From IMG/VR virus record IMGVR_UViG_3300021197_001489, positions 248,001-312,000 of that record: a stretch of 64,000 bases of DNA; one strand, given 5' to 3'. Both the position numbers and the translations under genes were made by a program. The first letter of the stretch is position 1, and each line of letters starts with the position of its first letter. The notes beneath the pieces are model-generated. The model was not told where the DNA came from. It saw only the letters and a list, made by a program, of their open reading frames with translations, and did no database searches. Below, in pieces: positions 9,494-47,674 of this stretch.

Positions 9494-9706
9494 ATGAGTC
9501 ATATGATGCCAGTACATTTTATAGGTGTAGCACAAGATCAGTTTGTTAGCGCAGTTCGCGTATTTGGCGAGCCTGATTTTGTACACAAATGGCATGATTA
9601 TCGCAGTCATGGAGACATAGACTGGGACAGTGATACAGTTGTTCTAGGCGACAAAGGTCGCACAACCCCTTGCAAATGGAGCTGGCAAGATCATGAACTA
9701 TACTAA
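9494..9706 (+). CDS. Hypothetical protein
   Basis: 70-aa ORF directly behind the early promoter. Confidence 0.55.
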   Translation: MSHMMPVHFIGVAQDQFVSAVRVFGEPDFVHKWHDYRSHGDIDWDSDTVVLGDKGRTTPCKWSWQDHELY

Positions 9707-20155: not shown

Positions 20156-20488
20156 ATGGGCGAAGAAGAAATTAAACAAGCAGGGTTTCACCCAGCAGAC
20201 ACCAACGGTGATGGAAACGTTACCAATGATGAACATGAAATGTACATGGAATTCAAACGTAAAGAACTTGAAGATCAAGATGCAATGCGCGATGCACAGC
20301 GTAAGATGGCATGGTTTAGTTTAGCAGGTATGCTCCTATATCCAGCTATTGTGCTAATTGCGGTGCTAGCCGGCATTGACCAAGCAGCAAAAATACTAGG
20401 CGATATGGCAGCCGTTTACTTTGTTTCAGTAGCAGCTATTGTTGCAGCATTCTTTGGTGCGCAAGCATATAACAAACCTAAGAAATAG
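20156..20488 (+). CDS. Putative holin-like membrane protein with EF-hand-like loop
   Basis: DTNGDGNVTNDE loop, two TM helices, basic C-terminus. Confidence 0.55.
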   Translation: MGEEEIKQAGFHPADTNGDGNVTNDEHEMYMEFKRKELEDQDAMRDAQRKMAWFSLAGMLLYPAIVLIAVLAGIDQAAKILGDMAAVYFVSVAAIVAAFFGAQAYNKPKK

Positions 20489-21042
20489 TGTACCCCCATC
20501 CATACTACTGCTGGCCAGACTATCCTGGCGTTGAAAACTTTTACTTTGTAAACATTCCAAAAAATTGCAGTACCACAGTGCGCAACTGGGCAGCATGGAT
20601 TGGAACACGTAATGGCAAACTAACCAAGCCTTTTCGTTTTACCATTCTGCGTGATCCGTATGGTAGACTCAAGAGTACATTTGCATATGGACTGAGTCAG
20701 CGATACAGTTACTTGGAAACGGTTGAAAGCATTGGCAACAAACTGTTAGGAGCCAGCGAGCTTTCTGGAGACTTGCTGACACATTTTATACCGCAGCATG
20801 TGTTTCTTGAACATGCGCCAGTTAAACCAGAACATTATTATCACAGTGGGCAGATGCGTGAATTGCGTCAAGAACTAAGCAACCGCAGCGGAATCGATCT
20901 TATATGGATACATGAGAATCGCAGCAGGTACAGTGCTGAGTTCACTGAGCAGTACAACAACTGGTTTGTAAAAAATCAAACCTGGATCGATGATTACCTT
21001 GGCCGAGATGTCGAATTATATGCTCAACACATTGTCTCTTAG
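20488..21042 (+). CDS. Sulfotransferase-family protein
   Basis: FVNIPKNCSTTVR and ILRDPYGRLKSTF; HFIPQ. Confidence 0.75.
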   Translation: MYPHPYYCWPDYPGVENFYFVNIPKNCSTTVRNWAAWIGTRNGKLTKPFRFTILRDPYGRLKSTFAYGLSQRYSYLETVESIGNKLLGASELSGDLLTHFIPQHVFLEHAPVKPEHYYHSGQMRELRQELSNRSGIDLIWIHENRSRYSAEFTEQYNNWFVKNQTWIDDYLGRDVELYAQHIVS

Positions 21043-22074
21043 CTCTTGGGTTATTGAATCAAAAAATTCATCACTAAAAAACAGCGTTTTGTTTTTGCTG
21101 GCTATAGTTTTACAGCTATTCCAAATTGATTCCTGTTGATTATCAGGTAAGTTATTGATACGATCCATCTCTTTTATGACCATGAGCATGCGCTTGTCGC
21201 AGTCTGATTCTGTATCATAACTTTCGTCAATAAAGGGTGAGAATGTTTCGAATCCGTAACTGCGCAAATATTTCAGTGTTCCAGCACCATTCAGTATCAT
21301 AAAAGGATGCCCGCATGCAATTGGGCGTAGTGTTTTTTCTGTAAGGTGGATGCGACCATCGTATACAGTTTCTAACACAATGCTGCAATTTGTTTTTGCA
21401 AAGTCTTCGCAGTTATATTCAGCACTGCTATTGCTGTTAACAACGGCGTCAGGATCAATACTGCCCAGTTGCTTTCTGTCAACAAACCTAAGCAGTTTTA
21501 AAAAATGTTGTCGGTATTGTCTTGTGCCAGTTGTGCCTCTGGCATACACTAACCAATTAGCCTCTTTGTCTTCTTGCGGTAGTTCAAGACGTTGGTCATA
21601 CTGAGCATATCTATACCAGTCTCGAGCAATTGCTGCATGACTCCACCAATAAGCACATGCAAATAGTCCACTGTCTTCATAGCGTTCTACTTGAGGGCTA
21701 GCCAGTTCACTGTGTAATAATATCCATTTTTCTGTGAAGTTTTGTGGGTGCTGCCATCTTAGATTTAGGTTCTCATAGTTAGATTTTTTAATATCATCGA
21801 TTTGTGTTGGAATAAAGTTACCACTAGCTACAAGTGCGTTGAGGATCTTTTGATCATCACTGTACATGTCAAAATCCAATGGCTCTTGATCGTGACAAAT
21901 TAGCACAGGAAAAGCAGCGTATTTTTTACGATATATATCTTCGTTCATTCGATCTACATTGCTTACTAGATTGGCAATATCTTTTTGTCCCCAGGGATAG
22001 AAGTATTTGATTAAAAATTTATTTTCTACCACCTGGGCGACAAAATTGTATAAATTACTAGTAGGAACAGACAT
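21016..22074 (-). CDS. Hypothetical protein, glycosyltransferase-like C-terminus
   Basis: SIVLET...LTEKTLRPI..GHPF..L...GTLKYLRSYGF resembles the GT10/fucosyltransferase-like donor-binding region. Start moved to ATG 22074. Confidence 0.5.
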   Translation of the reverse strand: MSVPTSNLYNFVAQVVENKFLIKYFYPWGQKDIANLVSNVDRMNEDIYRKKYAAFPVLICHDQEPLDFDMYSDDQKILNALVASGNFIPTQIDDIKKSNYENLNLRWQHPQNFTEKWILLHSELASPQVERYEDSGLFACAYWWSHAAIARDWYRYAQYDQRLELPQEDKEANWLVYARGTTGTRQYRQHFLKLLRFVDRKQLGSIDPDAVVNSNSSAEYNCEDFAKTNCSIVLETVYDGRIHLTEKTLRPIACGHPFMILNGAGTLKYLRSYGFETFSPFIDESYDTESDCDKRMLMVIKEMDRINNLPDNQQESIWNSCKTIASKNKTLFFSDEFFDSITQELRDNVLSI

Positions 22075-22090
22075 CTTAGAAAGGTACCTT

Positions 22091-23326
22091 ATGAGAATTG
22101 GATTTATTGGGCTTGGCAAGCTCGGACTTGATTGCGCCGAAGTAATGGCAGAAAAGTATACAGTACATGGCTACGATATTTACCCGCGTACTTCGGACAG
22201 TGTAAAAGTTTGTAGCACTCCCAAAAAGATGATTGACAACAGTGATTGGATTTTTATTGCTGTTCAAACGCCACACACAGAAGGTTATGATGGTAGTGTT
22301 CCTAGCTCGCACATGGAACCCAAAGACTTTGGACATGATGCTGTTAAAGATGCTATTAACATGGTAAACGAACTGGCTATCGAACCAAAAAAGATTGTGC
22401 TTATTTCAACAGTGCTTCCTGGAACTACACGACGTGAGTTTTATCCCTTGCTAAACAGTGAGCATCAATTTTTATACAATCCATACTTGATTGCAATGGG
22501 CAGTGTAAAGTGGGACTTTGCTAACCCTGAAATGGTTATGATAGGTACCGAAACAGGTGATCCTACAGAGATGGAAGATCTAATCAATCTGTATCGCCCA
22601 CTGATGAAAAACAATCCACGTTATGTTACAGGTACCTGGGACGAATGCGAAAGTATAAAGATATTTTACAACACATTTATCAGTGCTAAAGTAGGGCTTG
22701 TAAACATGATACAAGACTTTGCACTAAAGATAGGCAACATAAACGTTGACGTTGTTACAGACGCTCTAGCACAGAGTACAATGCGTATTATGGGTCCGAA
22801 GTACATGACAGCAGGCATGGGAGACTCAGGCGCATGCCATCCACGAGATAACATTGCACTGCGTTGGCTTGCAAAAGAATACGATATCGGTTACGATATG
22901 TTTGATACTATTATGGGTGCTAGAGAAGTACAAGCAAAGAATCTAGCAGACTTTTTGGTAGAACACGCCGACGGCAAGCCTATTGTGATACACGGGAAAG
23001 CATACAAACCTGATGTGCCTTTTTGTATCGGAAGTTATAGCACACTGATTGGTTTCTACATTGAAGAGCAAGGATTGCCGGTAAAGTATGTAGATCCAAT
23101 TGCAGACAATCCAAAAGACGTAGTTGATAGCATTGACGAAGCATCAATGATATTGTATGCACACAATAGATATATCACATACGGTTATACTGGACAGTAT
23201 ACCAAGGATGATACTTTCTACTGTGACATTCCACCAGGTTCTGTTGTTGTTGATCCATGGAGAAACCTGCCTAAACACAGTAACAGTTACGAAGTAATAC
23301 ATTATGGCAACACCAGACCACAATAA
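22091..23326 (+). CDS. ugd: UDP-glucose/GDP-mannose dehydrogenase family
   Basis: GFIGLGKLG, IAVQTP, STVLPGT, YNP, E..KIFYN, GDSGACHPRD, GKAYKP. Confidence 0.92.
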   Translation: MRIGFIGLGKLGLDCAEVMAEKYTVHGYDIYPRTSDSVKVCSTPKKMIDNSDWIFIAVQTPHTEGYDGSVPSSHMEPKDFGHDAVKDAINMVNELAIEPKKIVLISTVLPGTTRREFYPLLNSEHQFLYNPYLIAMGSVKWDFANPEMVMIGTETGDPTEMEDLINLYRPLMKNNPRYVTGTWDECESIKIFYNTFISAKVGLVNMIQDFALKIGNINVDVVTDALAQSTMRIMGPKYMTAGMGDSGACHPRDNIALRWLAKEYDIGYDMFDTIMGAREVQAKNLADFLVEHADGKPIVIHGKAYKPDVPFCIGSYSTLIGFYIEEQGLPVKYVDPIADNPKDVVDSIDEASMILYAHNRYITYGYTGQYTKDDTFYCDIPPGSVVVDPWRNLPKHSNSYEVIHYGNTRPQ

Positions 23327-23828
23327 AACATGGTGGCAAGGACACAGTGCTCCAGTATGGCAAGGAGCATTTGAAGACCTGCCATACAAAAACGAACCGT
23401 TCAATGATCCTGTAAGTTTAGCAGAATGGCGCAAGCTAGGGTACACACAAACAAAGTTCACCGGCGATATGTATGACATGCGCAATTCTGCACCCGGATG
23501 GATGAATGCAATTCGCAAAGTATTGCCTTGGAAACATTTTTCATGGAGTGTTTACAGAATGGATCCAGGGTGTTGCTTGCCAACACACGGCGATACATAT
23601 GCACGTTTCTGTAAGTTATACAACATCACAGACATGTACACAGTTCACAGAGCAATATTTTTTATGAAAGATTGGGAAAGCGGACACGTCTTTGAAATAG
23701 ATGGTGTACCGCAAACACAATGGCGTGCCGGAGACTACTATGTGTGGCGAAATGATACTGAGCATCTAGCAGCCAACGTTGGCAAAACACCTAGATACAG
23801 TCTACAGATTACTGGAGTTATCGAGTGA
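23304..23828 (+). CDS. 2OG-Fe(II)/cupin-fold oxygenase-like protein
   Basis: Facial triad H-G-D ... H (PTHGD, TEHLAAN); YSLQITG. Confidence 0.75.
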   Translation: MATPDHNKTWWQGHSAPVWQGAFEDLPYKNEPFNDPVSLAEWRKLGYTQTKFTGDMYDMRNSAPGWMNAIRKVLPWKHFSWSVYRMDPGCCLPTHGDTYARFCKLYNITDMYTVHRAIFFMKDWESGHVFEIDGVPQTQWRAGDYYVWRNDTEHLAANVGKTPRYSLQITGVIE

Positions 23829-36207: not shown

Positions 36208-36951
36208 TCACGCTAAGTTAAACACTGTGTCTGGGTTGCTGTTTGCTAGTATTTCTCTAGTACGTTCTGTTTTAAGTCCAGTCATCTGTAGCACTGCTCT
36301 TGGATGACTGCTTGCATTTGCTGTACAGTGTGGCACATTACTCCAATCAAACACATGCACTTCGCCCGCACGCCATTTATCATATATGCAATTGCCATAC
36401 ATATAAAAATGTCCTGGCTTCCAATCATCTAGCATAATAGTGATACGCACTATACGCTCTGGGTCTTCTGGACAACGATCCCACAGTTTGTCAATGTGCA
36501 TGTTAAACATCTGACCAGTCATCTGTATGTGTGCTTGCCACTTGACTAAACTAACACCATCACTGGTTAGCTGAAAGTAGTCCATCATTTTGTAAAGAGT
36601 TGGATAGTCTGACCAGTCTGCAAAACTATTTTTATTGGTAAGCATTATGCCTTTTGGATCACCGCCTGCTTGTGCAATGTCGTACTCTTCTTGGGACAGC
36701 ATGTCAGGATCTTTTTGCTTTTGAGCAAAATGTTTGCGAGTTGCCCAGTTTACAGGATGTGTTGCTTGTACAAGTCTATCACGTTCCTCACGCCAGTCTC
36801 CTTCAAATCTGCCAATTACGTTAAACCAATCGCCTGGACGATCCTCTACAGTGTCATCAAAATGATATTCACTGTGCCTAACAGTCCAATCCCAGCTGCT
36901 AGGATATAAATCTGGATTGTCTAGTTTTGTATTTTTATTCCAGTCTCTCAT
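36208..36951 (-). CDS. 2OG-Fe(II)/aspartyl-beta-hydroxylase-like oxygenase
   Basis: NMHID...PHCTAN; VLQMTG; same architecture as 23304-23828. Confidence 0.75.
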   Translation of the reverse strand: MRDWNKNTKLDNPDLYPSSWDWTVRHSEYHFDDTVEDRPGDWFNVIGRFEGDWREERDRLVQATHPVNWATRKHFAQKQKDPDMLSQEEYDIAQAGGDPKGIMLTNKNSFADWSDYPTLYKMMDYFQLTSDGVSLVKWQAHIQMTGQMFNMHIDKLWDRCPEDPERIVRITIMLDDWKPGHFYMYGNCIYDKWRAGEVHVFDWSNVPHCTANASSHPRAVLQMTGLKTERTREILANSNPDTVFNLA

Positions 36952-37325
36952 TATATGTCTCCTGCTGCTCGCAATACGTCTCGCATGTCTGTTGCACTGA
37001 TATTGTGTACTGTTTCTCCTAAGTTGTGTTTGGTAAAACTATAGCCAACATCACGTCCGTAACTGATATCAACGATGTTAGGTGCTTTCCATACAATATA
37101 ATGTTCAGTGTAATTGTATCCTGCTGCTTGCAAACCGTCTCTTATGCCGTGCCATACCTGCTCGTAATCAAATGGATTATCATTATCAATAGGCATTTCT
37201 CGGACCATTATTAGTACCTGTCCAGTTTTTTCTAATGCCTTAGCAAACAGTGCGGTGTGTCCATCATGCCATGGTTGAAACCTGCCAAGCATCTGTGTTG
37301 TGGGTTTGTTCCAATCAAACATCAC
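36951..37325 (-). CDS. HxGH nucleotidyltransferase (cytidylyltransferase-like)
   Basis: MLGRFQPWHDGH; ISAT.MR. Confidence 0.85.
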   Translation of the reverse strand: MMFDWNKPTTQMLGRFQPWHDGHTALFAKALEKTGQVLIMVREMPIDNDNPFDYEQVWHGIRDGLQAAGYNYTEHYIVWKAPNIVDISYGRDVGYSFTKHNLGETVHNISATDMRDVLRAAGDI

Positions 37326-37510
37326 ATTGACTCAATGTGCTTGATTGTATCGATGCGTATAGTAACTTGCCTGTGCAAATCATCTACAATTGCGTGAACG
37401 TCTTTATCTTTACCGGGGCCTGCTTTAATTAATGCAGACTTTTGCTCAGTAATAAGTGCTAGTATTTCTTTTCTAAGTGCTTCAATTGCAACCTCTTGCC
37501 ACATTTCCAT
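37322..37510 (-). CDS. Small hypothetical protein
   Basis: 62-aa ORF coupled within the operon. Confidence 0.5.
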   Translation of the reverse strand: MEMWQEVAIEALRKEILALITEQKSALIKAGPGKDKDVHAIVDDLHRQVTIRIDTIKHIESM

Positions 37511-37953
37511 TATAGTCTCTCCGTAGGTTTGTTTTGTTGTTTAAGCATGTAATTGGTGACAACCTTTGAAAGTTCTGTGTGCGTATCTTTAAACCAGGAT
37601 GATACGTGATAGTCGTAATAGTCTGGTTTTACAAATATGACATTTGTATCTTCGTATTGACTTTTTTTGATAGTATCCATCCACACTGTATAGTCAGCGT
37701 TAAACCAATCCCTAGCGAGCTGTGTGGGACAAACAAAATCTGCAACTGCAATTTTTCCTGCCATTACTACGCCATCTGCTAGATGACACATTCGCAAAGT
37801 TTGACGTAATCTTCCTTTTATACTGAAGTCCCAGTCATCGTATTGTGTTCGAACAGTATCTGCATTAAGCCATACGCCGCCTATCAGCTCGGCAAAAGGC
37901 TTAGCCAGTGTGCTTTTGCCGCTGCCCGGTAATCCACATATCAATATTTTCAT
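37510..37953 (-). CDS. cysC: Adenylylsulfate (APS) kinase-like P-loop kinase
   Basis: ILICGLPGSGKSTLA, LNAD.VR, D.DFS..GR.RQ, DFVCPT. Confidence 0.8.
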   Translation of the reverse strand: MKILICGLPGSGKSTLAKPFAELIGGVWLNADTVRTQYDDWDFSIKGRLRQTLRMCHLADGVVMAGKIAVADFVCPTQLARDWFNADYTVWMDTIKKSQYEDTNVIFVKPDYYDYHVSSWFKDTHTELSKVVTNYMLKQQNKPTERL

Positions 37954-37971
37954 ATTCAGGCATATCCTTTG

Positions 37972-38649
37972 TTAGAATTTAGTATCTTTTTCAACATGCG
38001 GCTTACTTCCATCAATCATTGTACCTATGTCGTTTCTACGTCTGTCAAGCCAACTGTTTTCTACATAGTGTACATACTTTGCATTTGGATCTTTGTTTAG
38101 TATGTAATGCAGTTTTTCATTGCTGTAGTCAACTGGAATATCAAGTACACTATCTAAACTTTTTACATATTGATGTCTAAACATGTAAAGCAATTCAACA
38201 CTTAGAAAAGTGTGCTTGTATTCCATTAAGTCATCAATCTTATTTAAGTAGTTGTGTAAACTTTCTACACCTCTTTTACGCAGTTGATTTTGTGCAGTAA
38301 TGTTTTGGTCTCTGCCAATAATACCAACTTGTAAGTTGCCTTTTTCATTTAACCTGCGCAATACTTCTGCATAGTCAGGATACTTTGTTTGCCTTACGCC
38401 ATTACTATGATCTTTATCAACATAAGGACCACTAACACTTAGCACATAGTTTTCATGCTCTGTCCAGTCATAGGCGTCAATGTGTTCAGGCGTGTTCCAA
38501 ATATCTTTGTATGGAGCATTATCATGGTTTACCCAGTACTCACGCAACAGTTGATCCCAGCCATGCACATTGCTGTGCATGGATAAGACTTTGCTGAACA
38601 CATGGTTACCAGTGCCTTGTGGGCCACTTATAACTAGTATGTTTGCCAT
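37972..38649 (-). CDS. Sulfotransferase/P-loop-like protein
   Basis: VISGPQGTGNHVFSKVL and IIGRDQN. Confidence 0.5.
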   Translation of the reverse strand: MANILVISGPQGTGNHVFSKVLSMHSNVHGWDQLLREYWVNHDNAPYKDIWNTPEHIDAYDWTEHENYVLSVSGPYVDKDHSNGVRQTKYPDYAEVLRRLNEKGNLQVGIIGRDQNITAQNQLRKRGVESLHNYLNKIDDLMEYKHTFLSVELLYMFRHQYVKSLDSVLDIPVDYSNEKLHYILNKDPNAKYVHYVENSWLDRRRNDIGTMIDGSKPHVEKDTKF

Positions 38650-39707
38650 TATTTTACCAACTCTGGCTTGAAGATTGATTTAAGACCAAATGCTTCTGTG
38701 TTGAACTTTACCAGTGTTTGCAGTGCATCAGCAGTTACAAACTTCATCAGTGTGTTTACTTGTGCATTGCCTGCATCACCTAGCATCCACTCATAGTTGC
38801 CAACTTTCTTTTGAATCTTCTTGATTGACTCAGGATTGGTTGACACCTTTTCAAGTGCTGCCACAAGTTTTGCTCTATTAGGATTGCCTTTGTTTACCCA
38901 CAATGCTTTTTGTAATCCATCTCGGAAACTTTTTACCAGCTTGTATGCATCTGCTAGATCGCCTTTTGGGTCTGCTTTGTACAGGGCAGAAAATTGTGTT
39001 TCCATTTGAATGCCTGGATAGTTTGGATCATCTGCGTGGGTACCGTCTGGCTGTAGAATGCCATGATGGAACCATAAACGTGCTTCACCTTTGTCAATTA
39101 CTGGCTGTACATGCTTTTTGAATGAAGCAGGATTTTCACGAGTGCCATTGAGTTCGCCACGCTTGAATGCAAGACGTCTTTCGTTGCCCTTCATTCCTTT
39201 AATCCAGTTTACCTTTTCGTTGAAGCAACCAACGTATGCTTCTGTGCTAGGTAAATTACCACACTTTAGCAGTGTCATTGCGATACCTTCAGGAACTTTA
39301 CCGCCGCCTCCTGAGAAACTTGTTCTGTCAGCATTGGGATTATGATCGCCATGTACTGCTGTAATAATGTTAAGGTTCATTAGTCCAACTGAATCATAGT
39401 CAGCATAGTTGTAATCCACTGCTTCTTGTAAGAAACTTACACCGTTGCCGCCGTTGGATACCATAATAGTTTTGTCATCAAAACGCAGTTCATTGTGGAA
39501 CTTGTTAAAGCCTGGAATATCCCTTGCACCACGGATGTGCTTGAGAATAATTTTTTCATCCAAGTATTTTTCCATCTCAGTGGCCACAATCTGTGCCCAC
39601 TGACTTGTACCGCCGCCTGGCTTCTGTGGTACAATCATTGTGTAATCAGCAACTGCTGATGTTGTAAAACCTAGCATCAGTGCTAGTGATAATAAAAGTT
39701 TACGCAT
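38649..39707 (-). CDS. tctC: Tripartite tricarboxylate transporter substrate-binding protein (TctC/Bug-like)
   Basis: Signal peptide; MIVPQKPGGGTS; next to tctA. Confidence 0.8.
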   Translation of the reverse strand: MRKLLLSLALMLGFTTSAVADYTMIVPQKPGGGTSQWAQIVATEMEKYLDEKIILKHIRGARDIPGFNKFHNELRFDDKTIMVSNGGNGVSFLQEAVDYNYADYDSVGLMNLNIITAVHGDHNPNADRTSFSGGGGKVPEGIAMTLLKCGNLPSTEAYVGCFNEKVNWIKGMKGNERRLAFKRGELNGTRENPASFKKHVQPVIDKGEARLWFHHGILQPDGTHADDPNYPGIQMETQFSALYKADPKGDLADAYKLVKSFRDGLQKALWVNKGNPNRAKLVAALEKVSTNPESIKKIQKKVGNYEWMLGDAGNAQVNTLMKFVTADALQTLVKFNTEAFGLKSIFKPELVK

Positions 39708-41139
39708 AATCTATTCTTCCTTTTCTCATAATGCTGTATACAAATATTCCAATAATACACACAATTAGTGACATGAATATTGGACGTGTGATTAATGTTT
39801 CCACAGTGTAAAGTCCTGTGATCTGAAATGTTAATCCTTCAACTTTTTCTGCCAGTATGTAACCGATTAACATAGCAGGTCTGCTAAACTTGTAGTGTCG
39901 CATTGTAAATCCTATTACAGAAAATACTGCTAACATTGCAAGGTCTTCCCAACCGCCTGTGTACTGCATTGAAGTAAAAATAATCAATCCTAGTAGCACA
40001 GGAAAATAATATTTGTATGGAACTGCGGCCAGTTTACTAATTGGCTTGATTAAAACCATACAAATCAGTGCAACTACAACTGTGGCACCTAAAAAGCCAA
40101 ATGTCATACTTGCAAATAATTCTGTGTCTTCTGCAATATCTGGCGTGCCCAGTTCGATGCCCAAGTACATAAACAGGCTCATCAATATAGCTGCAAACTT
40201 TGCACCTGGTATGCCAAATATAACTGTGGTAATCATTGATGTTGCCTTTTGTGCATTGTTAGCACCCTCAGGTCCTATCACACCCTTGATGTTGCCATTG
40301 CCAAACTTTTCTTTGGGATTACTGGCAACTGCTTGTCCATACGCCATCCAGTCTGCCATTTGCCCACCTAGTCCAGGCAACAAGCCAATGAACGCACCTA
40401 TAAAGCCACCGCGCAAAGCAAGCCATCTGTTCTCCCAACTTGCTTTCATGCCTGCCCATAGCTCACCATCGCGTATTTCACTGTCAGCAGTGCTGTGCTT
40501 TAAAAACAGCCCTCGTGTTAGTTCAGGAACAGCAAACAGTCCTGCGGCAACTGCCATTATCTGTATACCATCTTCTAAGTAGAACCAATATTGTGCGCCG
40601 AATCTGGCTGCATTATTATCTGGGTTGACACCTACCATGCCTACAAAGATTCCAAAAGCAATAGCAAGGATGGTGCGGAACCAAAACTGGTTGGTTAAAA
40701 ATCCCACAGTGACAAATGCCATTAAAACAAAAGCCCACAGTTCAGGCACACCCAGTATATAGATTAAATTGGTATACCATGGCAACAATAAAAATACCAA
40801 ACACCCCCAAAGCAAACCGTTTACAGTTGATGTTGTTACTGCGGCACTGATAGCATAGCCTGCTCTGCCACGTTGGGCTAGTGGAAAGCCATCAACCATG
40901 GTAGCGGCTGCACTGTTAGCACCGGGTATGCCTAGCAGTATTGCAGTGAAACTGTCACCTGTTGTGCTTGCAGCAACTACTGCCATAAGGAATATTACTC
41001 CCATATATGGCTCGTGTGCAAAGTAGCTAATAAATCCAAACAGTGCAACCAAACCTGTTGTTGCCCCTGCACTGGGAATAATGCCTATAATTAGGCCATA
41101 AAATACTCCGCCGAGCAGATATGTAATCATCTCGATCAT
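39700..41139 (-). CDS. tctA: Tripartite tricarboxylate transporter permease TctA
   Basis: ILLGIPG...AATMVDGFPLA..G, IGLLPGLG, GPEGANNA, FGIPG; about 12 TM helices. Confidence 0.92.
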   Translation of the reverse strand: MIEMITYLLGGVFYGLIIGIIPSAGATTGLVALFGFISYFAHEPYMGVIFLMAVVAASTTGDSFTAILLGIPGANSAAATMVDGFPLAQRGRAGYAISAAVTTSTVNGLLWGCLVFLLLPWYTNLIYILGVPELWAFVLMAFVTVGFLTNQFWFRTILAIAFGIFVGMVGVNPDNNAARFGAQYWFYLEDGIQIMAVAAGLFAVPELTRGLFLKHSTADSEIRDGELWAGMKASWENRWLALRGGFIGAFIGLLPGLGGQMADWMAYGQAVASNPKEKFGNGNIKGVIGPEGANNAQKATSMITTVIFGIPGAKFAAILMSLFMYLGIELGTPDIAEDTELFASMTFGFLGATVVVALICMVLIKPISKLAAVPYKYYFPVLLGLIIFTSMQYTGGWEDLAMLAVFSVIGFTMRHYKFSRPAMLIGYILAEKVEGLTFQITGLYTVETLITRPIFMSLIVCIIGIFVYSIMRKGRIDYA

Positions 41140-41186
41140 ACCGAATCCACCGCCAAAAAGCAGTGCCTTTAAAAAGTTAGGGGGTA

Positions 41187-41225
41187 TTACAAGCGAACTC
41201 TTTTACATTCAGGCGTTGCTTGTAA
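41187..41225 (-). promoter_or_regulatory. 5' stem-loop in the tctA leader
   Basis: TTACAAGC...GCTTGTAA inverted repeat just after CTAAGTA (41237-41243, minus). Confidence 0.45.
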
Positions 41226-41235
41226 GTGTATGCTT

Positions 41236-41916
41236 TTACTTAGTACGCCAAACAAAGTACAGTCGATTTTTATGACTGTCAGTTCTAATATCCAGTATGT
41301 CGACGCCAAGTTGATCGGCACAGTTTACAATAAAGTTAGCGTCCCAAGGATAAAAACTAATCCATGTTGACTCATCTCTATCATGTGGCAAACCTGGATT
41401 AGCACGGAAAAATATTACTGCGCCTGGATTGCATAAACTTACTGCATGTTCAAGTTCAGCAAATATTTTTGAAGTTGATCCAAAGTTGATTGAACCCAAT
41501 GCCATCATTGCGTCATACTTTTCACCTGGATGGTAGTCTAACAACTTAACACAAATATCAGCTGAATCGTTATATGGATCAATGCCAATGAGATTGTGTA
41601 TTTTTCCTTTAAACTCGTGATATCCGCAACCAATGTCTAGCACCTTACGTGGCCTTAGTTGGTTTACTTCGTCAATCAATGCAGGTCCTGAATATTTAAA
41701 TCTTTTAATATGTCCTTGCCATACATTGCGAAAGTAATTGTCCAAGACTAGATCATCAATCTTGTCTACTAATTCACCAATGTTGGTATAACTTACGTCT
41801 TCAACGTCTACATTGAATGTACCACGAATTGCTTGCCGTAGCGTTTCTGGCTTGCGCAGTAGCTTGGGTGAAACATGTATCATGTTTTCCAGTTTATTGA
41901 GTATTTTGTGATTCAT
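41236..41916 (-). CDS. Class I SAM-dependent methyltransferase
   Basis: VLDIGCG, GIDP, YD...ALGSINF, FRANPG. Confidence 0.8.
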   Translation of the reverse strand: MNHKILNKLENMIHVSPKLLRKPETLRQAIRGTFNVDVEDVSYTNIGELVDKIDDLVLDNYFRNVWQGHIKRFKYSGPALIDEVNQLRPRKVLDIGCGYHEFKGKIHNLIGIDPYNDSADICVKLLDYHPGEKYDAMMALGSINFGSTSKIFAELEHAVSLCNPGAVIFFRANPGLPHDRDESTWISFYPWDANFIVNCADQLGVDILDIRTDSHKNRLYFVWRTK

Positions 41917-42781
41917 TTTTTAGTTTCCATTGTTTGTAAAAATAGTCTGCATATATTTTGTTTGCTGCTTGGTTATGATGATAACCGTCACGATTGCAGT
42001 AGAGATCTTTGTAAAGCTCGTATTCGTGTAAAAAATTACCTGGCATATCTGGATGAGGCTCCACGCCTTTGATAAATTCTGCATATGTTGGACAACCTTC
42101 GAATCGCAGATTATTGTAAGAACTTTCTACGGTGTACTTCAATCTATTCTGATCAACAACGGCTACGTGGTCTGCATAATACTGTGGAGGATATGGCAGT
42201 TTATATATTCCCAATTTATTCAAGTCTTTTCTCCAGTTTGTCAACGCTTCGCCTGATTGTGCTTCATATGCATCTGTTAAACGGTGTGTTGCAAAATATA
42301 GAATCTTTTGATTATCTTCTACAGGGTATTGAATAAAATCTTCGCCGTGCAATTTACGATGAAGAAAAACTGACATACGTTCTGCGGTAAACACAGTATA
42401 CATAACAAAAGTATTTTTTACATCAAATAAAGTACAAGCTCTTTCTGCTACCAGCTTTATGGTATCATTGGCGGCGCTATTCATACCCAGATTAATTGTG
42501 GGAATATCAAAATGTTCTGCCAATTGGCTACACCAACTGTGTTCTATCGGCCCGCCAACGTTGACAACAACACTATCTCCTATGCAGATGTTTACAGGCT
42601 TGCCAAGAAATTGTGTATATTCTGGTCCTCTAAAACCCCAACTGTTAAACTGATATTCAAAGTCAGGATACGCATGCCACTCTTCTCTTGTGCGGTTGCA
42701 CCCATCTGGGTTATCCATACTAAATGTTTTAGCTGTAAGGTTGGCCTTACCAACAAAATATTGAAAATCATCAATCAACAT
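41894..42781 (-). CDS. SGNH-like hypothetical protein
   Basis: FNSWGFRG, CIGDS, NLGMNSA, C-terminal RDGYH. Confidence 0.55.
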   Translation of the reverse strand: MLIDDFQYFVGKANLTAKTFSMDNPDGCNRTREEWHAYPDFEYQFNSWGFRGPEYTQFLGKPVNICIGDSVVVNVGGPIEHSWCSQLAEHFDIPTINLGMNSAANDTIKLVAERACTLFDVKNTFVMYTVFTAERMSVFLHRKLHGEDFIQYPVEDNQKILYFATHRLTDAYEAQSGEALTNWRKDLNKLGIYKLPYPPQYYADHVAVVDQNRLKYTVESSYNNLRFEGCPTYAEFIKGVEPHPDMPGNFLHEYELYKDLYCNRDGYHHNQAANKIYADYFYKQWKLKNESQNTQ

Positions 42782-43349
42782 CAGGTCTGTGTGTTCCTAC
42801 AAAAATATCATTATGCTTGTGATGTTGTTTCCATTGTACACTATTCTTCTGTGCAAAGTCAAGTATCAATTTGTTCTGTTCTTGAATACGGTAAGACATT
42901 AAATAATCACTTTCGTACCAGTCATAGTTTGGATATGTAATATCAAAACCGCCTGCTTGCTTCCACCAAAGGAAACTTGGCCAGTCTGGTCTGTAAATCA
43001 ATTGTATCCAAGCAAGTGGATAGGCATCTTGTATTTGTTCAAAGTAGTAGGGCCACTCATGACTCATTAACAGTTTGCATCCACTATTTTCAGTGTAGGG
43101 AGCATCTAAGTTGCTGCGATTTAGACTGCAATCAAACTCCATGCCGGTGCCATAATATGCTTCAGTGTGTCCTATTTTGGAATGGTGTTGGTATGCGCGA
43201 TGTGCTGCACGGTCAGTGCAGTTGTAGTTGTTAGAGCTTTTGATTTCTTTAGCAATACCACTCCAGCGACTGCCCGGCACGCCTGTAAAAAAGATGTACT
43301 CCGGTAATGTCATTTTGGTATAAGTATCCTGTCTATATTTCGAGGACAA
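42771..43349 (-). CDS. Sulfotransferase/P-loop-like protein
   Basis: FFTGVPGSRWSG, LMSHE, LIYRP. Confidence 0.45.
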   Translation of the reverse strand: MSSKYRQDTYTKMTLPEYIFFTGVPGSRWSGIAKEIKSSNNYNCTDRAAHRAYQHHSKIGHTEAYYGTGMEFDCSLNRSNLDAPYTENSGCKLLMSHEWPYYFEQIQDAYPLAWIQLIYRPDWPSFLWWKQAGGFDITYPNYDWYESDYLMSYRIQEQNKLILDFAQKNSVQWKQHHKHNDIFVGTHRPDVD

Positions 43350-43942
43350 ACTGCAACCACTTTGTAATTGTATTCAGTTTCTAATAGTGTAATCGCAATG
43401 TCTTGATTGCGAAAACCAGGTTGTGCTTCGCATACTATTAATGGTTTATACGTTCGAATAGTTTTATCTGCACCTTTGATTATGTCGTATTCGAATCCAT
43501 CAGTATCTATTTTAATATAATCTACATCATTGATATTAAAATCATCCAATGGGTATGTTTTTTCATTATAATCTGGATTACCGAAGAAGCTGTCGGTTCG
43601 TGGGTATTCACATATGGTATTGCCCACACAACATCTAAAGTAAGTTACCTTGTCTTTTCTGATATTACGTGGAAATAGTTTACGAACCCTAGGATCAAAT
43701 CCATACACATGCCCAAAGTGTTCTTGCAAATACCGTGTGTATTCTCCGTCTCTACAACCAATATCTACTGCATTTCTAAAATGTTTTATATAAGGTTGAC
43801 TCAATAACCATGTTAGTTTGCAGTGGTGATTGGGAAACTCCTGTATACCATCTGGGCTATGAAAGAAGTCTCTTGCATACCATTCGCTTTCAAAAATGTA
43901 AGACTCTGGCATAAATGTAGTAGGCTCAATTGGATAGTGCAT
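43310..43942 (-). CDS. FkbM-family methyltransferase
   Basis: AVDIGCRDG, GFDP, LDDF...DYIKIDTDGFE.DIIKGA..TI...KPLI.CE. Confidence 0.85.
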   Translation of the reverse strand: MHYPIEPTTFMPESYIFESEWYARDFFHSPDGIQEFPNHHCKLTWLLSQPYIKHFRNAVDIGCRDGEYTRYLQEHFGHVYGFDPRVRKLFPRNIRKDKVTYFRCCVGNTICEYPRTDSFFGNPDYNEKTYPLDDFNINDVDYIKIDTDGFEYDIIKGADKTIRTYKPLIVCEAQPGFRNQDIAITLLETEYNYKVVAVCPRNIDRILIPK

Positions 43943-45725: not shown

Positions 45726-45746
45726 TCTACTTTAGACTGCATTTGG

Positions 45747-45775
45747 GAAAGCCACCTTCGGGTGGCTTTCTTTTT
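45747..45775 (+). terminator. Rho-independent terminator with UUCG tetraloop
   Basis: GAAAGCCACC-TTCG-GGTGGCTTTC-TTTTT. Confidence 0.92.
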
Positions 45776-45787
45776 ATAAGTAGTAGT

Positions 45788-47674
45788 ATGAAGAACGTAT
45801 ATCTGGCACAAATGAGCTTGGAATTGCCAGGATCGAACTATTATTATTTTCCATACAGTATTGGAGTGGTTTGGGCATACGCAACTACACAACCTGATAT
45901 AAATGAAAACTATCAATTGTGTAATATTTTTAGCGTAAAAGAGCCAATCGACCGTTTAATGGAAAAAATTGTTGATCCAGGAATACTTGGACTTTCAAGT
46001 TATACATGGAACACCATGTACAACGAGGAACTTGCACGACGTGTCAAAGAAAAGTATCCTGAATGCACAGTGATAATTGGTGGGCCAAATACGCCTAACA
46101 ACAGCGAAGGGTATTTTGAAACCCGCCCTTATGTAGATTTTATAACACATCAAGAAGGCGAGGGGTCATTTACTGGATTACTTCGGCATCTTGTGGGCAA
46201 GCAGGAACTGATGGAAATTGCTGGGATCAGCATCAATAACAACGGCAAAACTGTAATGACCGGGCCAAGTCAACGTGTGGCTCTCGACGATGTACCATCC
46301 CCATATCTCATGGGCCTGTTTGACAACATCAAAACTGAACACCCGAACTTGATATTTAATGGTGTGCTCGAGACCAATAGAGGATGTCCGTTTATGTGTA
46401 CATTCTGTGACTGGGGCGGCACAACATTTTCAAAACTAAAACGTTTTGGCATGCAACGCATAGCTGACGAAATTGACTGGATGGGTCGCAACAAGATTGA
46501 AATGGTTGTAAACAGTGATGCCAACTTTGGTATACTCAAAGAACGCGATGTACTCATTGCAGATATGTTGATTGAGACCAAACAAAAGTACGGCTTTCCT
46601 GTACTGTTTGATACAAACTGGAGCAAGAACGCAACAACACAACTAGTCGACATTGCTGTCAAACTTATGGAAGCGCAGATGATGAGACGCTTTACCATGG
46701 CATTGCAAAGCACTAACCAAGACGTCTTAAAGAATATTAAACGTGTAAATCTCAAAGAAGAAGCAATGACTCGTGTTGCAGAAACTGCCTTTAGCAATGG
46801 CATGAGCGTTAACACCGAATTAATTATTGGCCTGCCTGGTGAAACATGGGAGTCATGGACTTCTGGTTTGTGTCATCTATTAAGTAGGGATATTATTGTT
46901 GAAGCGTATCCTGTGACTATATTGATGAACAGTGAAATGGGCCAGGATGACTATATTGACAAACATGGTATCACATCAACAACACTAAAAAGTTTTTTCT
47001 CTAAGTATGTTGATGAATGGCAAATCATGCTTACTGGAACAAACACATTGCCCGAAGCACAGATGAAAAAATTATGGTTATGGACTTGGCTTACATCAAT
47101 GATGGATGCAAATGGATATACACAGGTTGTATCGCGCTATCTCAACAAACGTCACGGCGTGCCATTTGAAAAGTTCTACGAGCGGCTGCTGGACTATGGA
47201 CTTGAAACACCCGATAGTGCGTTTCATCCTTGGTTGCACAAGTGGCAAGACTATGCTGAACAACTGGAGTTCAACATGTTTCTAGCCGGACTAACTTATT
47301 CACCTGTGATGCAAGACCTTGGACTGCACAAACGACAGCAAACCTATCAGGACATTTACGCTGTAGCACAGGAATTTGCTCCGCAAGATACACTGTTGCA
47401 GGATGTTATGATAGCGCAAGAGAGGCAACAAACCATATTCAATCACGAAGAAACAACCAAAATTACACTGAACGCCAATGTGTTTGAATACTCGTTGGGC
47501 AAAGAAGAATTAGATATTGCGCCAACAAGCTATGTATTCCACAGGGCATATCCGCCAAAAGGCACAAATCCTAGCTGGGTTGAGTGGTATAACAGTACTA
47601 GAAAAAACAAAAAGTGGCAGGCTAGGGTAGAAAAAATCACAAAAAAAGCAACTCTTTTTCACGAAAACGGTTGA
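45788..47674 (+). CDS. B12-binding radical SAM protein
   Basis: N-terminal cobalamin-binding-like domain (GLSSYTWN, IIGGP, EGE); TNRGCPFMCTFC (CxxxCxxC); D.NFG; ELIIGLPGET. TATAAGTA promoter at 45775. Confidence 0.92.
   Translation: MKNVYLAQMSLELPGSNYYYFPYSIGVVWAYATTQPDINENYQLCNIFSVKEPIDRLMEKIVDPGILGLSSYTWNTMYNEELARRVKEKYPECTVIIGGPNTPNNSEGYFETRPYVDFITHQEGEGSFTGLLRHLVGKQELMEIAGISINNNGKTVMTGPSQRVALDDVPSPYLMGLFDNIKTEHPNLIFNGVLETNRGCPFMCTFCDWGGTTFSKLKRFGMQRIADEIDWMGRNKIEMVVNSDANFGILKERDVLIADMLIETKQKYGFPVLFDTNWSKNATTQLVDIAVKLMEAQMMRRFTMALQSTNQDVLKNIKRVNLKEEAMTRVAETAFSNGMSVNTELIIGLPGETWESWTSGLCHLLSRDIIVEAYPVTILMNSEMGQDDYIDKHGITSTTLKSFFSKYVDEWQIMLTGTNTLPEAQMKKLWLWTWLTSMMDANGYTQVVSRYLNKRHGVPFEKFYERLLDYGLETPDSAFHPWLHKWQDYAEQLEFNMFLAGLTYSPVMQDLGLHKRQQTYQDIYAVAQEFAPQDTLLQDVMIAQERQQTIFNHEETTKITLNANVFEYSLGKEELDIAPTSYVFHRAYPPKGTNPSWVEWYNSTRKNKKWQARVEKITKKATLFHENG

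Follow-up and report, generated by a model that had tools for sequence, protein, structure and literature searches.

An inverted block of eleven genes in a marine jumbo phage raises the question of whether a virus can make its own sulfate donor, PAPS, and for which enzymes. The first-pass annotation had proposed that a 124-aa HxGH protein in the block may be a minimal sulfate adenylyltransferase, or an activator of a sulfonate or phosphonate, and that with an APS-kinase-like protein and the neighboring genes it would form a self-contained import-activate-transfer-methylate-hydroxylate system for a novel modification of the virion, DNA or cell surface. We found the gene block to be exactly as described. 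The interpretation was supported in part: comparative evidence favors the supply of PAPS by the two enzymes, but not a single self-contained eleven-gene system.

The inverted gene block

The window analyzed here, G000:C1:248001-312000, is a stretch of 64,000 nucleotides from a 316,012-bp IMG/VR virus record (IMGVR_UViG_3300021197_001489; G000:C1 denotes this record). The eleven contiguous minus-strand ORFs, at 36208-43942, are in the order g11 to g1, as previously listed (Table 1). Neighboring ORFs overlap or abut, apart from one 96-nt gap between g8 and g7. The flanking genes are on the plus strand, and the GC skew flips sign across 36-43 kb.

Table 1. Positions in the window of the genes in the inverted block and of two further proteins outside it.
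Gene	Position	Strand	Length (aa)	Assignment
g11	43310-43942	-		FkbM-family methyltransferase
g10 (ST192)	42771-43349 (42771-43313 from the likely true start, residue 13)	-		Sulfotransferase-like P-loop protein
g9	41894-42781	-	295	Possible SGNH/GDSL-like protein
g8 (MT226)	41236-41916	-		SAM methyltransferase-like protein
g7	39700-41139	-		TctA, large membrane subunit of a tripartite tricarboxylate-type transporter
g6	38649-39707	-	352	Divergent TctC-like periplasmic binding protein with a signal-peptide-like N-terminus
g5 (ST225)	37972-38649	-		P-loop protein with a predicted sulfotransferase fold
g4	37510-37953	-	147	APS-kinase-like P-loop kinase with a shortened lid
g3	37322-37510	-	62	Function unknown
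g2	36951-37325	-	124	HxGH nucleotidyltransferase (NT)
g1	36208-36951	-		2OG/Fe(II) oxygenase of Asp/Asn-beta-hydroxylase (AspH) type
Outside the block	20488-21042	+	184	Protein with classical sulfotransferase motifs
Outside the block	3754-4302	+	182	Protein with a sulfotransferase 3'-phosphate motif

The family assignments were of uneven strength. TctA (306.8 bits over its full length) and FkbM (Methyltransf_21, 47.6 bits, cut-off 22.7) were clear, while APS_kinase (30.4 bits, cut-off 21.1) and CTP_transf_like (22.4 bits) were above the Pfam cut-off but weak. Both sulfotransferase-like proteins in the block, the TctC-like protein and the 2OG oxygenase had no Pfam hit, and these four assignments rest on fold, language-model neighbors, motifs and context. 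The absence of canonical Sat, CysD and CysN, noted previously for the window, could be extended to the whole record for two families: no ATP-sulfurylase domain (PF01747) was found, and only an 11.5-bit, sub-threshold match to PAPS_reduct (CysD-type, PF01507). CysN itself was not searched for. The genome carries one copy each of the NT and the kinase.

The kinase and the nucleotidyltransferase

The kinase and the NT form a conserved, tightly coupled pair, translationally coupled or fused. In 66-69 of 80 kinase-anchored viral loci, the NT lies directly downstream on the same strand, mostly with a spacing of -11 to +2 nt, and the two are fused in phrog_10255, Xylella phage Sano gp35, phiRSL1 ORF238 and DLP_6, and in 66 of 80 further loci. 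The intervening g3 had no family hit. Homologues of g3 were detected in 4 of the 80 related loci, and a comparable gap of about 160-270 nt separates kinase and NT in 17; since the two genes overlap or are fused in most relatives, g3 is dispensable.

The family profile of the kinase hit APS kinases first (2yvu at 2e-9, 2gks, 3uie and PAPSS1). In an alignment to a canonical CysC domain, the P-loop, D32, R35, F43-S44, R48, F73..P76 and R81 were shared, and these map to the catalytic Asp480, Phe492 and Arg497 of M. tuberculosis CysC, that is, the catalytic base, one (the first) adenine-stacking Phe and the Arg (PMC4373884). The kinase is an APS-kinase derivative that keeps most APS-site residues, including the catalytic Asp, both Arg residues and the first adenine-stacking Phe, although it has LNAD in place of LDGD, with Asn for the first Asp, and a lid shortened by roughly 25 residues.

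The NT carries the motifs GRFQPWHDGH, NPF, PNI, YGRDVGY and ISATDMR. Its family profile hit the archaeal NMN adenylyltransferase (NMNAT) 1f9a at E 2e-5, and the AF2 model (pLDDT 82.8) was closest in fold to NadM (Z 9.6) and NMNAT (9.0), followed by PPAT (8.4) and ATP sulfurylase (7.1). The NT lacks the QXRN sulfate-binding motif of Sat, having GRxQPxHxGH instead. However, it has an invariant G-R-(D/G)-V-G-Y loop after strand 4, in the same topological position as the GRD loop that holds the sulfate of APS in ATP sulfurylase.

That the protein might be a plain NMN adenylyltransferase had been put forward at the outset as a result that would undo the proposal, and the comparison bore this out only halfway. 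Archaeal/NadM-type NMNAT (1f9a, 1ej2, 2qjt) is the nearest solved family by sequence and fold and shares GRxQPxHxGH, NPF and ISxTxxR. On the other hand, the NT scored about 25 bits against NMNAT family cut-offs of 127-181, and it is about 20 residues shorter in the acceptor-binding segment between strand 4 and ISxT, where it carries the GR(D/G)VGY loop instead. We considered the possibility that the pair carries out NadR-like NAD+ salvage, in which the kinase would phosphorylate nicotinamide riboside and the NT would adenylylate NMN, restoring NAD+ during infection, for example against NAD-depleting defenses. NadR also appeared among the relatives of the NT, a P-loop kinase joined to an HxGH NT is the NadR architecture, and phage NadR and NadM are known (PMC9503650). 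However, a NadR-type entry was matched by the kinase profile only through its P-loop (E 0.17), the genome has no NadV, and the genomic partners of the NT are an APS kinase and sulfotransferases rather than NadV or Nudix. NAD+ salvage also does not explain the adjacency to sulfotransferases or the fusion of the NT family to canonical CysC, and we regard it as very unlikely.

This fusion was seen in P0223, a marine protein in which the NT is joined to a canonical, full-length APS kinase (211.9 bits). P0223 and its relatives form at least 177 clusters at 90% identity, occur on independent contigs, and are annotated only as “adenylyl-sulfate kinase” or “CysN/CysC”. The NT domain of P0223 is 38% identical to g2, with 33 shared invariant residues. 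Another protein, P0232, shows an intermediate form of the kinase (61 bits). The fusions bear on a second alternative, in which the same two-step chemistry acts on a different acceptor: the NT would adenylylate a phosphate-, sulfonate- or carboxylate-bearing compound, as PPAT does, and the kinase would add the 3'-phosphate, as dephospho-CoA kinase does, yielding a CoA-like or PAPS-like cofactor other than PAPS. The fold match to PPAT, the departures of the kinase from canonical CysC, the lack of the Sat sulfate motif and the divergent importer beside the pair in this block are consistent with such a reading. It appears unlikely, however, because an apparently ordinary CysC should be specific for APS, and because the recurrent neighbors are sulfotransferases from three Pfam families that use PAPS.

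The pair resembles the bifunctional PAPS synthases (animal PAPSS1/2; bacterial Sat-CysC and CysN-CysC fusions) in combining a nucleotidyltransferase-superfamily enzyme with an APS kinase homologous to CysC, often fused, with the kinase N-terminal as in PAPSS. It would differ in that the sulfurylase part is a domain of about 120 aa from the NMNAT/PPAT-like branch, with no PUA-like or extra domains and no PF01747 match.

The transporter core and the tailoring genes

The conserved core of the block in relatives is ST192-TctA-TctC-ST225, usually with a methyltransferase and an oxygenase. These four genes are adjacent and usually overlapping across TctA identity classes of 78-100% and 41-58%. The TctC-like gene follows TctA, overlapping it or separated by <100 nt, in every related locus with enough flank, and ST225, which is always translationally coupled to it, directly follows it in most TctA-anchored loci that retain the downstream flank. 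ST192 abuts TctA, on its upstream side, in many loci.

Compared to the tripartite tricarboxylate transporters (TctABC/Bug family), TctA is a full-length member, but there is no TctB, as no small membrane ORF lies beside it, and the TctC-like protein is too divergent for Pfam, with only a weak BugD match (E 0.17) over the xVPxxxGGxT loop near its N-terminus. The pair is flanked by two sulfotransferase-like genes in most related loci. It is encoded by a virus, although there was no credible match to TctA in isolated phages; the closest relatives found (all six genome-collection hits, 53-66% identical) carry the same TctA-TctC pair, three of them with ST192- or MT226-like genes. Viral tctA has been noted as an unexplained AMG (PMC4164917).

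An exhaustive structure search with the AF2 model of g5 (pLDDT 72.8) placed sulfotransferases on top (TPST2, Z 9.5; OLS-ST, 9.4; TPST1, NDST, 3-OST and Stf1), with 160-173 aligned residues, and its Atlas neighbors carry Sulfotransfer_3/1. Those of g10 carry the same domains at scores of 0.90-0.93. Both have P-loop-like and RD-type segments at the expected places, with invariant GPQGxGNH and GRDQN replacing the classical PAPS motifs in g5, and invariant GxPGSxWS and YRP segments in g10. However, both lack the catalytic Lys/Arg and the Ser/Thr of the 5'-phosphosulfate loop and match no sulfotransferase HMM, and profile-profile comparison with true viral sulfotransferases matched only the P-loop. 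For g1, Pfam found almost nothing, but 28 of its top 100 Atlas neighbors carry PF05118 (score 0.96), and the family invariants H152-x-D154...H208...R218 align in register with a PF05118 protein.

MT226 had a weak Methyltransf_23 hit (E 6e-4) with a VLDIGCG motif, recurs beside the Tct core, and is fused to a g10-like domain in two related loci (L122:3278-4387 and L103:4343-5452). g9 gave only weak hits (DUF6473, E 1.4e-3; GDSL_LA_2490, E 2.7e-3) and is a variable accessory gene, present in only some relatives at 39-56% identity; a paralogue lies at G000:C1:175568-175837. For g11, only distant relatives (23-32% identity) occur in related loci.

Sulfotransferase neighborhoods and the proposed route to PAPS

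Independent assortment of the genes in relatives had been named beforehand as evidence against a common system. The genes sort into modules. The core, with MT226 and the AspH-like gene, recurs without the kinase-NT pair, and the pair recurs mostly without TctA (3 of 80 loci). In close relatives ST225 abuts AspH directly, so that the pair is an insert here, between g5 and g1. In one lineage the kinase has decayed and the NT is gone while the Tct core persists, and in another genome, G004, the NT lies about 20 kb from the Tct module. These observations, together with the variability of g9 and g11 and the common listing of cysC-type genes as viral sulfur AMGs, are consistent with a hypervariable accessory region where unrelated auxiliary genes pile up, with the pair serving host sulfur assimilation or something unrelated to its neighbors. 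We consider this doubtful, since the pair lies next to Tct-module genes in at least four different arrangements (the window and the related loci L018, L080/L082 and the L105 type), the core is conserved, g10-like and g8-like domains are fused, and a trio of AspH, kinase-NT and sulfotransferase recurs in unrelated contigs.

In 43 of 79 further viral loci, the kinase-NT fusion has a Pfam-positive Sulfotransfer_3/1 or Sulfotransfer_2 gene within 6 kb, and 17 of these are adjacent. These sulfotransferases sit closer than a random gene slot (2.5 vs. 5.4 genes; 0 of 10,000 permutations), although the counts are not phylogenetically independent, comprising 6 lineages at 70% single linkage. In 10 loci, a Pfam-positive AspH gene directly upstream is followed by the fusion and then by Sulfotransfer_2. 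By contrast, four complete cultured phage genomes with the fusion have no detectable sulfotransferase, and most marine kinase-NT loci show replication or sugar-nucleotide neighbors. On cellular contigs, the NT-CysC fusion lies 3-8 kb from TPR-sulfotransferases.

Taken together, we favor, with moderate confidence, a composite sulfation and tailoring island built from two recurrent modules. The first (g4, g3 and g2) most likely acts as a minimal two-enzyme PAPS synthase, in which the NT would adenylylate sulfate (ATP + sulfate -> APS + PPi) and the kinase would phosphorylate the 3'-OH of APS to give PAPS. The second (the translationally coupled operon g10, g7, g6 and g5, usually with g8 and g1 beside it) would import an unidentified anionic compound, and then hydroxylate, O-sulfate and methylate an acceptor that is likewise unidentified, whether on the virion, DNA or cell surface. 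In this view, PAPS would come from the first module, because the phage has no Sat or CysD-type domain. The gene order, the pairing and fusion of kinase and NT, the ancestry of the kinase, the fusion of the NT family to canonical CysC, and the statistical association of the pair with bona fide sulfotransferases and AspH-type oxygenases are shown here, whereas sulfate as the substrate of the NT, the sulfotransferase activity of g5 and g10, the cargo of the transporter and the acceptor are inferences, for which there is no biochemical evidence. If correct, the NT would be a previously unrecognized kind of sulfate-activating enzyme, one that is also common in other phages and in marine bacteria.

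Two further proteins in the window, outside the block, matched an HMM built from Pfam-positive viral Sulfotransfer_2 proteins. The 184-aa protein (E 2e-5), a further likely PAPS consumer, carries IPKNCSTT (5'-phosphosulfate loop) and LRDPYGRLKS (3'-phosphate motif), and the 182-aa protein (E 2e-4) carries the 3'-phosphate motif VRNPYDRLLS.

Gene content of the inverted island

The observation made in the first-pass annotation held: eleven minus-strand ORFs lie between plus-strand genes, in exactly the order that it had listed, namely an FkbM methyltransferase (g11), a sulfotransferase-like protein (g10, ST192), an SGNH-like protein (g9), a methyltransferase (g8, MT226), TctA (g7), a TctC-like protein (g6), a second sulfotransferase-like protein (g5, ST225), an APS-kinase-like protein (g4), a small ORF (g3), an HxGH nucleotidyltransferase (g2, NT) and a 2OG oxygenase (g1). 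The ORFs overlap or abut, apart from one 96-nt gap, and the GC skew inverts across the block. The window (bases 248001-312000) belongs to a 316,012-bp IMG/VR virus record with a CheckV completeness of 91%, and the large terminase of this virus is 53% identical to that of Pseudomonas jumbo phage PA5oct and relatives. Homologues of the island genes come overwhelmingly from marine metagenomes, including Tara. A megablast search of the island against 50,697 phage records gave no match, while tblastn found nothing for g5 and a single uncultured marine virus for g10. A promoter and terminator scan of the island gave no more sites than shuffled sequences did, and a tRNA scan of the window found none.

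The family assignments are of unequal strength. TctA (306.8 bits) and the FkbM methyltransferase (Methyltransf_21, 47.6 bits against a cut-off of 22.7) are firm. The g4 kinase (APS_kinase, 30.4 bits) and the g2 NT (CTP_transf_like, 22.4 bits) are above cut-off, but the matches are partial. No Pfam hit was obtained for g1, g5, g6 or g10, and sequence searches of these four proteins against the PDB returned only noise, apart from a weak BugD match for g6 (E 0.17). g6 has a signal-peptide-like N-terminus and a weak BugD-like loop, and no TctB ORF was found, so that the tripartite tricarboxylate transporter is not present with all three components.

For g5, the AlphaFold model has a pLDDT of 72.8. 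Foldseek was ambiguous between archaeal adenylate kinases and sulfotransferases, with a TM of about 0.4, but an exhaustive structure comparison matched the model best to sulfotransferases (TPST2, Z 9.5; olefin-synthase ST, Z 9.4; TPST1, NDST, 3-OST and Stf1), with TPST2, the olefin-synthase ST, TPST1, NDST and 3-OST at Z 8.2-9.5 and 160-173 residues aligned, ahead of nucleotide kinases by a modest margin. No Sulfotransfer_1/2/3/4 model, nor any other Pfam model, matched g5, g10 or 20 g5 homologues, even at E 10, and there was no PF13469 hit in the genome. No model of g10 was made, and its assignment rests only on language-model neighbours (Sulfotransfer_3/1 clusters, scores 0.90-0.93) and on motif resemblance. 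Where sulfotransferases have the 5'-phosphosulfate loop (PKxGTT) and the 3'-phosphate motif (RDxxxRxxS), g5 has GPQGxGNH and GRDQNIxxQ and g10 has GxPGSxWS and YRP, a resemblance that does not settle the matter either way. Profile-profile alignment (hhalign) of the g5 and g10 families against Pfam-positive viral sulfotransferase clusters, and against each other, gave only P-loop matches with a probability of ≤16%. Classical versions of the motifs do occur in the window, in two small proteins outside the island that match an HMM built from Pfam-positive viral Sulfotransfer_2 proteins; a PDB search with the 184-aa one found nothing.

The g1 oxygenase has an HxD...H iron triad and a 2OG-binding Arg that are invariant in 11 homologues and align in register with a protein of the Asp/Asn beta-hydroxylase family (AspH, PF05118), and its atlas neighbours carry PF05118. 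However, Pfam matched only 1 of the 11 members, at E 0.053, and hhalign of the g1 family against the Pfam-positive AspH cluster was not significant, so that membership of PF05118 was neither confirmed nor excluded. A second g1-like oxygenase follows a UDP-glucose/GDP-mannose dehydrogenase gene about 13 kb from the island, in what looks like a glycan-modification cluster.

Coordinates of the island and of other features in the window, the genome (G000) and related loci (L numbers; positions without a prefix are those of the window)
Location	Strand	Length	Feature
36208-43942	-		Island of eleven ORFs
3754-4302	+	182 aa	Protein with classical sulfotransferase motif VRNPYDRLLS
9693-12020		775 aa	FG-GAP repeat protein
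20488-21042	+	184 aa	Protein with classical sulfotransferase motifs IPKNCSTT and LRDPYGRLKS
22007-23326	+		UDP-glucose/GDP-mannose dehydrogenase
23304-23828	+		Second g1-like oxygenase (E 1.6e-11 against the g1 family)
42395-42664			Part of g9, 72% identical in DNA to G000:C1:175568-175837
45743-47674	+	643 aa	B12-binding radical SAM enzyme, just beyond the island on the other strand
58587-62453	+	1288 aa	He_PIG Ig-like domains combined with a class 3 lipase domain
G000:C1:175568-175837			Paralogue of the SGNH-like gene g9, outside the window
L103:4343-5452		369 aa	g10-like sulfotransferase-like domain fused to a g8-like methyltransferase domain
L122:3278-4387		369 aa	g10-like sulfotransferase-like domain fused to a g8-like methyltransferase domain
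L105:13909-14259		116 aa	Degenerate kinase, following AspH and preceding a carbamoyltransferase
L136:2359-3414		351 aa	Calcineurin-like phosphoesterase directly beside the kinase-NT fusion
L221:10001-10936			NT-canonical CysC fusion, marine metagenome contig
L222:4631-5566			NT-canonical CysC fusion, marine metagenome contig

Affinities of the kinase and the nucleotidyltransferase

The kinase and the NT form a conserved unit. PHROG 10255 (“kinase”, 230 aa) matches g4 with its first half and g2 with its second half, and tblastn found such fusions in Xylella phage Sano (gp35), in Stenotrophomonas, Xanthomonas and Clavibacter phages, and in Ralstonia phages phiRSL1 and RsoM2USA. Of 80 IMG/VR loci holding a 59-81% identical kinase, 66-69 have the NT directly downstream on the same strand, with a spacing of -11 to +2 nt in 45 and a gap of about 160-270 nt, like the one that holds g3 here, in 17. 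A profile of the NT family found 1,673 clusters (50% identity) at E ≤ 1e-3 among 1.84 billion representatives, many of which are kinase-NT fusions of 250-290 aa. Architectures joining the NT to chorismate synthase, DHQS_C or UCH fragments were treated as probable mis-calls and were not used. Complex prediction for the kinase and the NT gave a score of 0.01, which counts neither for nor against binding.

The kinase family profile ranks APS kinases first in the PDB (2yvu at 2e-9, then 2gks, 3uie and PAPSS1). The g4 score against PF01583 exceeds the gathering cut-off of 21.1 bits, although only profile positions 5-90 of 152 are matched and the NCBIfam scores, about 24 bits, are far below the cut-offs of 127-163. 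An alignment with a canonical CysC domain retains the P-loop (GLPGSGKST), the second Asp of LDGD (D32), which is the proposed catalytic base in M. tuberculosis CysC, R35, F43, which is one of the two Phe that sandwich the APS adenine, R48 and the FxxP strand (F73..P76) (roles from PMC4373884). The first Asp is replaced by an invariant Asn (LNAD), and the second Phe of the sandwich (Y99/F) was assigned by eye only. The full-length lid of about 30 residues, with its Lys and Arg, is not present: the lid is much shorter, and MAFFT places gaps opposite the KGLYKKARAG..FTGI segment of canonical CysC.

The NT belongs to the NMNAT-like branch, not to Sat. Its profile hits archaeal NMNAT (1f9a, 2e-5) and NadM, and its model (pLDDT 82.8) aligns best with NadM (Z 9.6), archaeal NMNAT (Z 9.0), PPAT (Z 8.4) and NadR (Z 7.9), while the ATP sulfurylase from Thermus (1v47) reaches Z 7.1 at rank 9 and PAPSS1 Z 6.0. 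There was no match to the ATP-sulfurylase domain (PF01747) anywhere in the 316-kb genome at E ≤ 1, and g2 hits only CTP_transf_like. The QXRNXXHXXH motif of Sat, in which Gln and Arg bind sulfate (PMC3779200), is absent: g2 has GRFQPWHDGH, in which the HxxH is present but Gln and Arg are not in the Sat register. An invariant G90-R91-(D/G)92-V93-G94-Y95 loop follows strand 4 of the model, in the topological place of the GRD loop that contacts the phosphosulfate in Sat, but the His-Ala that follow in Sat are absent; the position is equivalent, while the comparison does not settle whether this is the GRD loop of Sat. The motifs of archaeal/NadM NMN adenylyltransferases (GRFQPFHxGH and ISGTxxR) are represented by GRFQPWHDGH and ISATDMR.

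That g2 might be a plain NMN adenylyltransferase had been named at the outset as an outcome that would overturn the proposal. The comparisons indicate that it is not. It scores 25.4 bits against a cut-off of 127 (NF002243) and 20.1 against 181 (TIGR01527); only residues 12-84 and the ISxT motif align, so that there is no full-length match including the NMN-binding segment, and the stretch between strand 4 and the ISxT motif is about 20 residues shorter; and it carries the invariant loop there. A NadR-like NAD salvage function fits the nearest relatives of the NT, but does not fit the kinase, the CysC fusions and sulfotransferase context described below, or the absence of NadV from this genome, and we consider it very unlikely.

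Fusions, neighbours and modularity

Among the NT-profile hits, the 311-aa protein P0223 joins this NT to a canonical, full-length APS kinase (PF01583, 211.9 bits, positions 2-151 of 152). Its NT part is 38% identical to g2, with all 33 invariant positions shared. The fusion is found on independent contigs, and its NT region retrieved at least 177 clusters (90% identity) of proteins of about 310 aa; all those listed carry PF01583, and annotation pipelines name them only “adenylyl-sulfate kinase” or “CysN/CysC”. These fusions lie on cellular-looking contigs with glutamate synthase, acetyl-CoA carboxylase and an MFS transporter, with TPR-sulfotransferase genes and a giant RTX-type protein 3-8 kb away; in the L221 and L222 contigs the neighbours are an MFS/PTR2 transporter, an unknown protein of about 660 aa, a 1,684-2,048-aa HemolysinCabind protein and TPR-sulfotransferases. 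The presence or absence of Sat and CysDN in genomes with the fusion was not scored. In P0232, a 395-aa metagenome protein, a membrane DUF4118 domain is fused to an intermediate-type APS kinase (61 bits; LNGDEVR, ELGFS..DR) and the NT, linking the canonical and phage-type kinases. In all known cases, canonical CysC is fused only to sulfate-activating enzymes (Sat, CysN). The same chemistry on another, CoA-like acceptor is possible for the divergent phage kinases, but is hard to square with the canonical CysC fusions, and appears unlikely.

Co-occurrence across phage genomes had been proposed beforehand as a check on the first-pass reading, and was examined in a second set of 80 viral loci, retrieved with P0223, which are mostly kinase-NT fusions (66 of 80). 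In 43 of 79, a sulfotransferase passing Pfam cut-offs (Sulfotransfer_3/1 at 62 and 43 bits, or Sulfotransfer_2 at 40 bits) lies within 6 kb, and in 17 it is adjacent. In 10 loci the order is PF05118 AspH, then the kinase-NT fusion, then Sulfotransfer_2, and at least eight different arrangements and two sulfotransferase families are involved. These sulfotransferases sit nearer than a random gene slot (2.5 vs. 5.4 genes, 0 of 10,000 permutations). However, the loci are related to each other, and single linkage at 70% identity collapsed the 79 proteins into 6 groups, so that the statistics cannot be claimed as independent events; no phylogeny-aware co-occurrence test was run. No Sat, CysD or CysN appears among the frequent neighbours that were annotated. 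A calcineurin-like phosphoesterase lies directly beside the fusion in 9 loci (L136 and eight similar ones), and could remove the by-product PAP or pyrophosphate, although this was not tested. In the first, marine set of 80 loci, Sulfotransfer_2-like genes abut the pair in 7. Conversely, four complete cultured phage genomes with the fusion lack any detectable sulfotransferase.

The present genome has one NT, one kinase, no ATP-sulfurylase domain, no NadV and no real PAPS_reduct hit. The window contains four candidate sulfotransferases, namely g5, g10 and the two classical-motif proteins, and the local order g1 (AspH-like), NT, kinase, g5 mirrors the AspH, kinase-NT, sulfotransferase trio seen elsewhere.

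Independent assortment of the genes in relatives had also been set out in advance as evidence that would count against a single system, and here the island proved to be modular. Thirty-five viral loci anchored on TctA (78-100% identical), plus more distant ones (41-66%), share a core of ST192-TctA-TctC-ST225, with genes that are adjacent and usually overlapping; MT226 usually lies upstream and the AspH-like gene downstream. In five related loci (L092, L095, L096, L119 and L125), ST225 is followed directly by AspH, and the kinase-g3-NT segment is therefore an insert in the present genome. In the L105 type, the kinase remnant after AspH keeps the P-loop but has lost the DxxR/WDFS substrate segment, and there is no NT. 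Other arrangements place the pair beside Tct-module genes in different orders: locus L018 has TctA, AspH, an ST225-like gene, then kinase and NT, whereas L080/L082 have the kinase, MT226, TctC, then TctA. In the genome G004, the NT lies about 20 kb from the module. The fusion of g10-like and g8-like domains in two loci suggests that both act on one substrate. Only 3 of 80 kinase-anchored loci have TctA nearby; there the neighbours are mostly T4-type replication genes, carbamoyltransferase and sugar-nucleotide enzymes, and carbamoyltransferases neighbour the pair in 24 of 80 marine loci. Accretion of unrelated accessory genes would explain the modularity, but not the repeated, differently ordered adjacency or the domain fusions, and we regard it as doubtful.

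A search of genome-collection contigs with TctA returned nothing, but a second search, with an alignment, found six MAG contigs (L127-L132), labelled Legionellales, Weeksellaceae, Omnitrophota, Ignavibacteriaceae and others. These closest “bacterial” TctA relatives (53-66% identical) come from MAGs of unrelated phyla, all six sit next to the TctC-like gene, and three also have ST192- or MT226-like genes, which looks like viral contigs binned into MAGs. No donor lineage or host could be named.

Proposed route of sulfate activation

The first-pass annotation had inferred that the 124-aa HxGH protein may be a minimal sulfate adenylyltransferase within a self-contained import-activate-transfer-methylate-hydroxylate system, an interpretation that our analysis supports in part. 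In the mechanism that we propose, g2 would form APS from ATP and sulfate and g4 would convert it to PAPS, and coupling or fusion of the two would pull the unfavourable first step, as in PAPS synthases. PAPS would then feed g5, g10 and the two classical-motif enzymes, the AspH-type oxygenase may create the hydroxyl that is sulfated, the methyltransferases would tailor the same acceptor, and TctA-TctC would import either the anion to be activated or the acceptor. The gene architecture, the homologies, the fusions and the associations were demonstrated by the analysis, whereas this mechanism is inferred, and no activity, acceptor or cargo was shown; we hold the PAPS-supply reading with moderate confidence. 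In this view, the system is a PAPS synthase that differs from those already known in having a non-orthologous, minimal sulfurylase, accompanied by a viral sulfation cassette. Literature searches for phage PAPS synthesis or phage sulfotransferases returned nothing relevant, no paper in the library searched describes this NT family, and viral tctA has only been listed as an unexplained AMG.

A more far-reaching possibility, which we consider about as likely as not, is that the HxGH domain of about 120 aa typified by g2 is a third, unrecognised class of ATP sulfurylase that evolved from the NMNAT-like branch of the nucleotidyltransferase superfamily. It would work fused or coupled to APS kinase in many phages, which would use it to fuel virus-encoded sulfation, and would also occur in abundant marine bacteria. 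Sulfate activation is thought to be done by only two enzyme types, Sat and CysDN, and a third type of this size would change how sulfur-assimilation and sulfation capacity are read from genomes. At present, marine genomes in which the fusion is annotated only as an APS kinase would be scored as lacking a sulfurylase. It would also show that many phages bring their own PAPS supply together with sulfotransferases and hydroxylases. That points to virus-directed sulfation of an unknown target, which could be a virion, the cell envelope or a metabolite, a modification not described for phages in the literature searched here. The virus-encoded TctA-TctC importer wired to these enzymes poses a second open question. 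Elsewhere in the window, the 1288-aa protein with Ig-like and lipase domains and the FG-GAP repeat protein are both probably virion or host-surface proteins.
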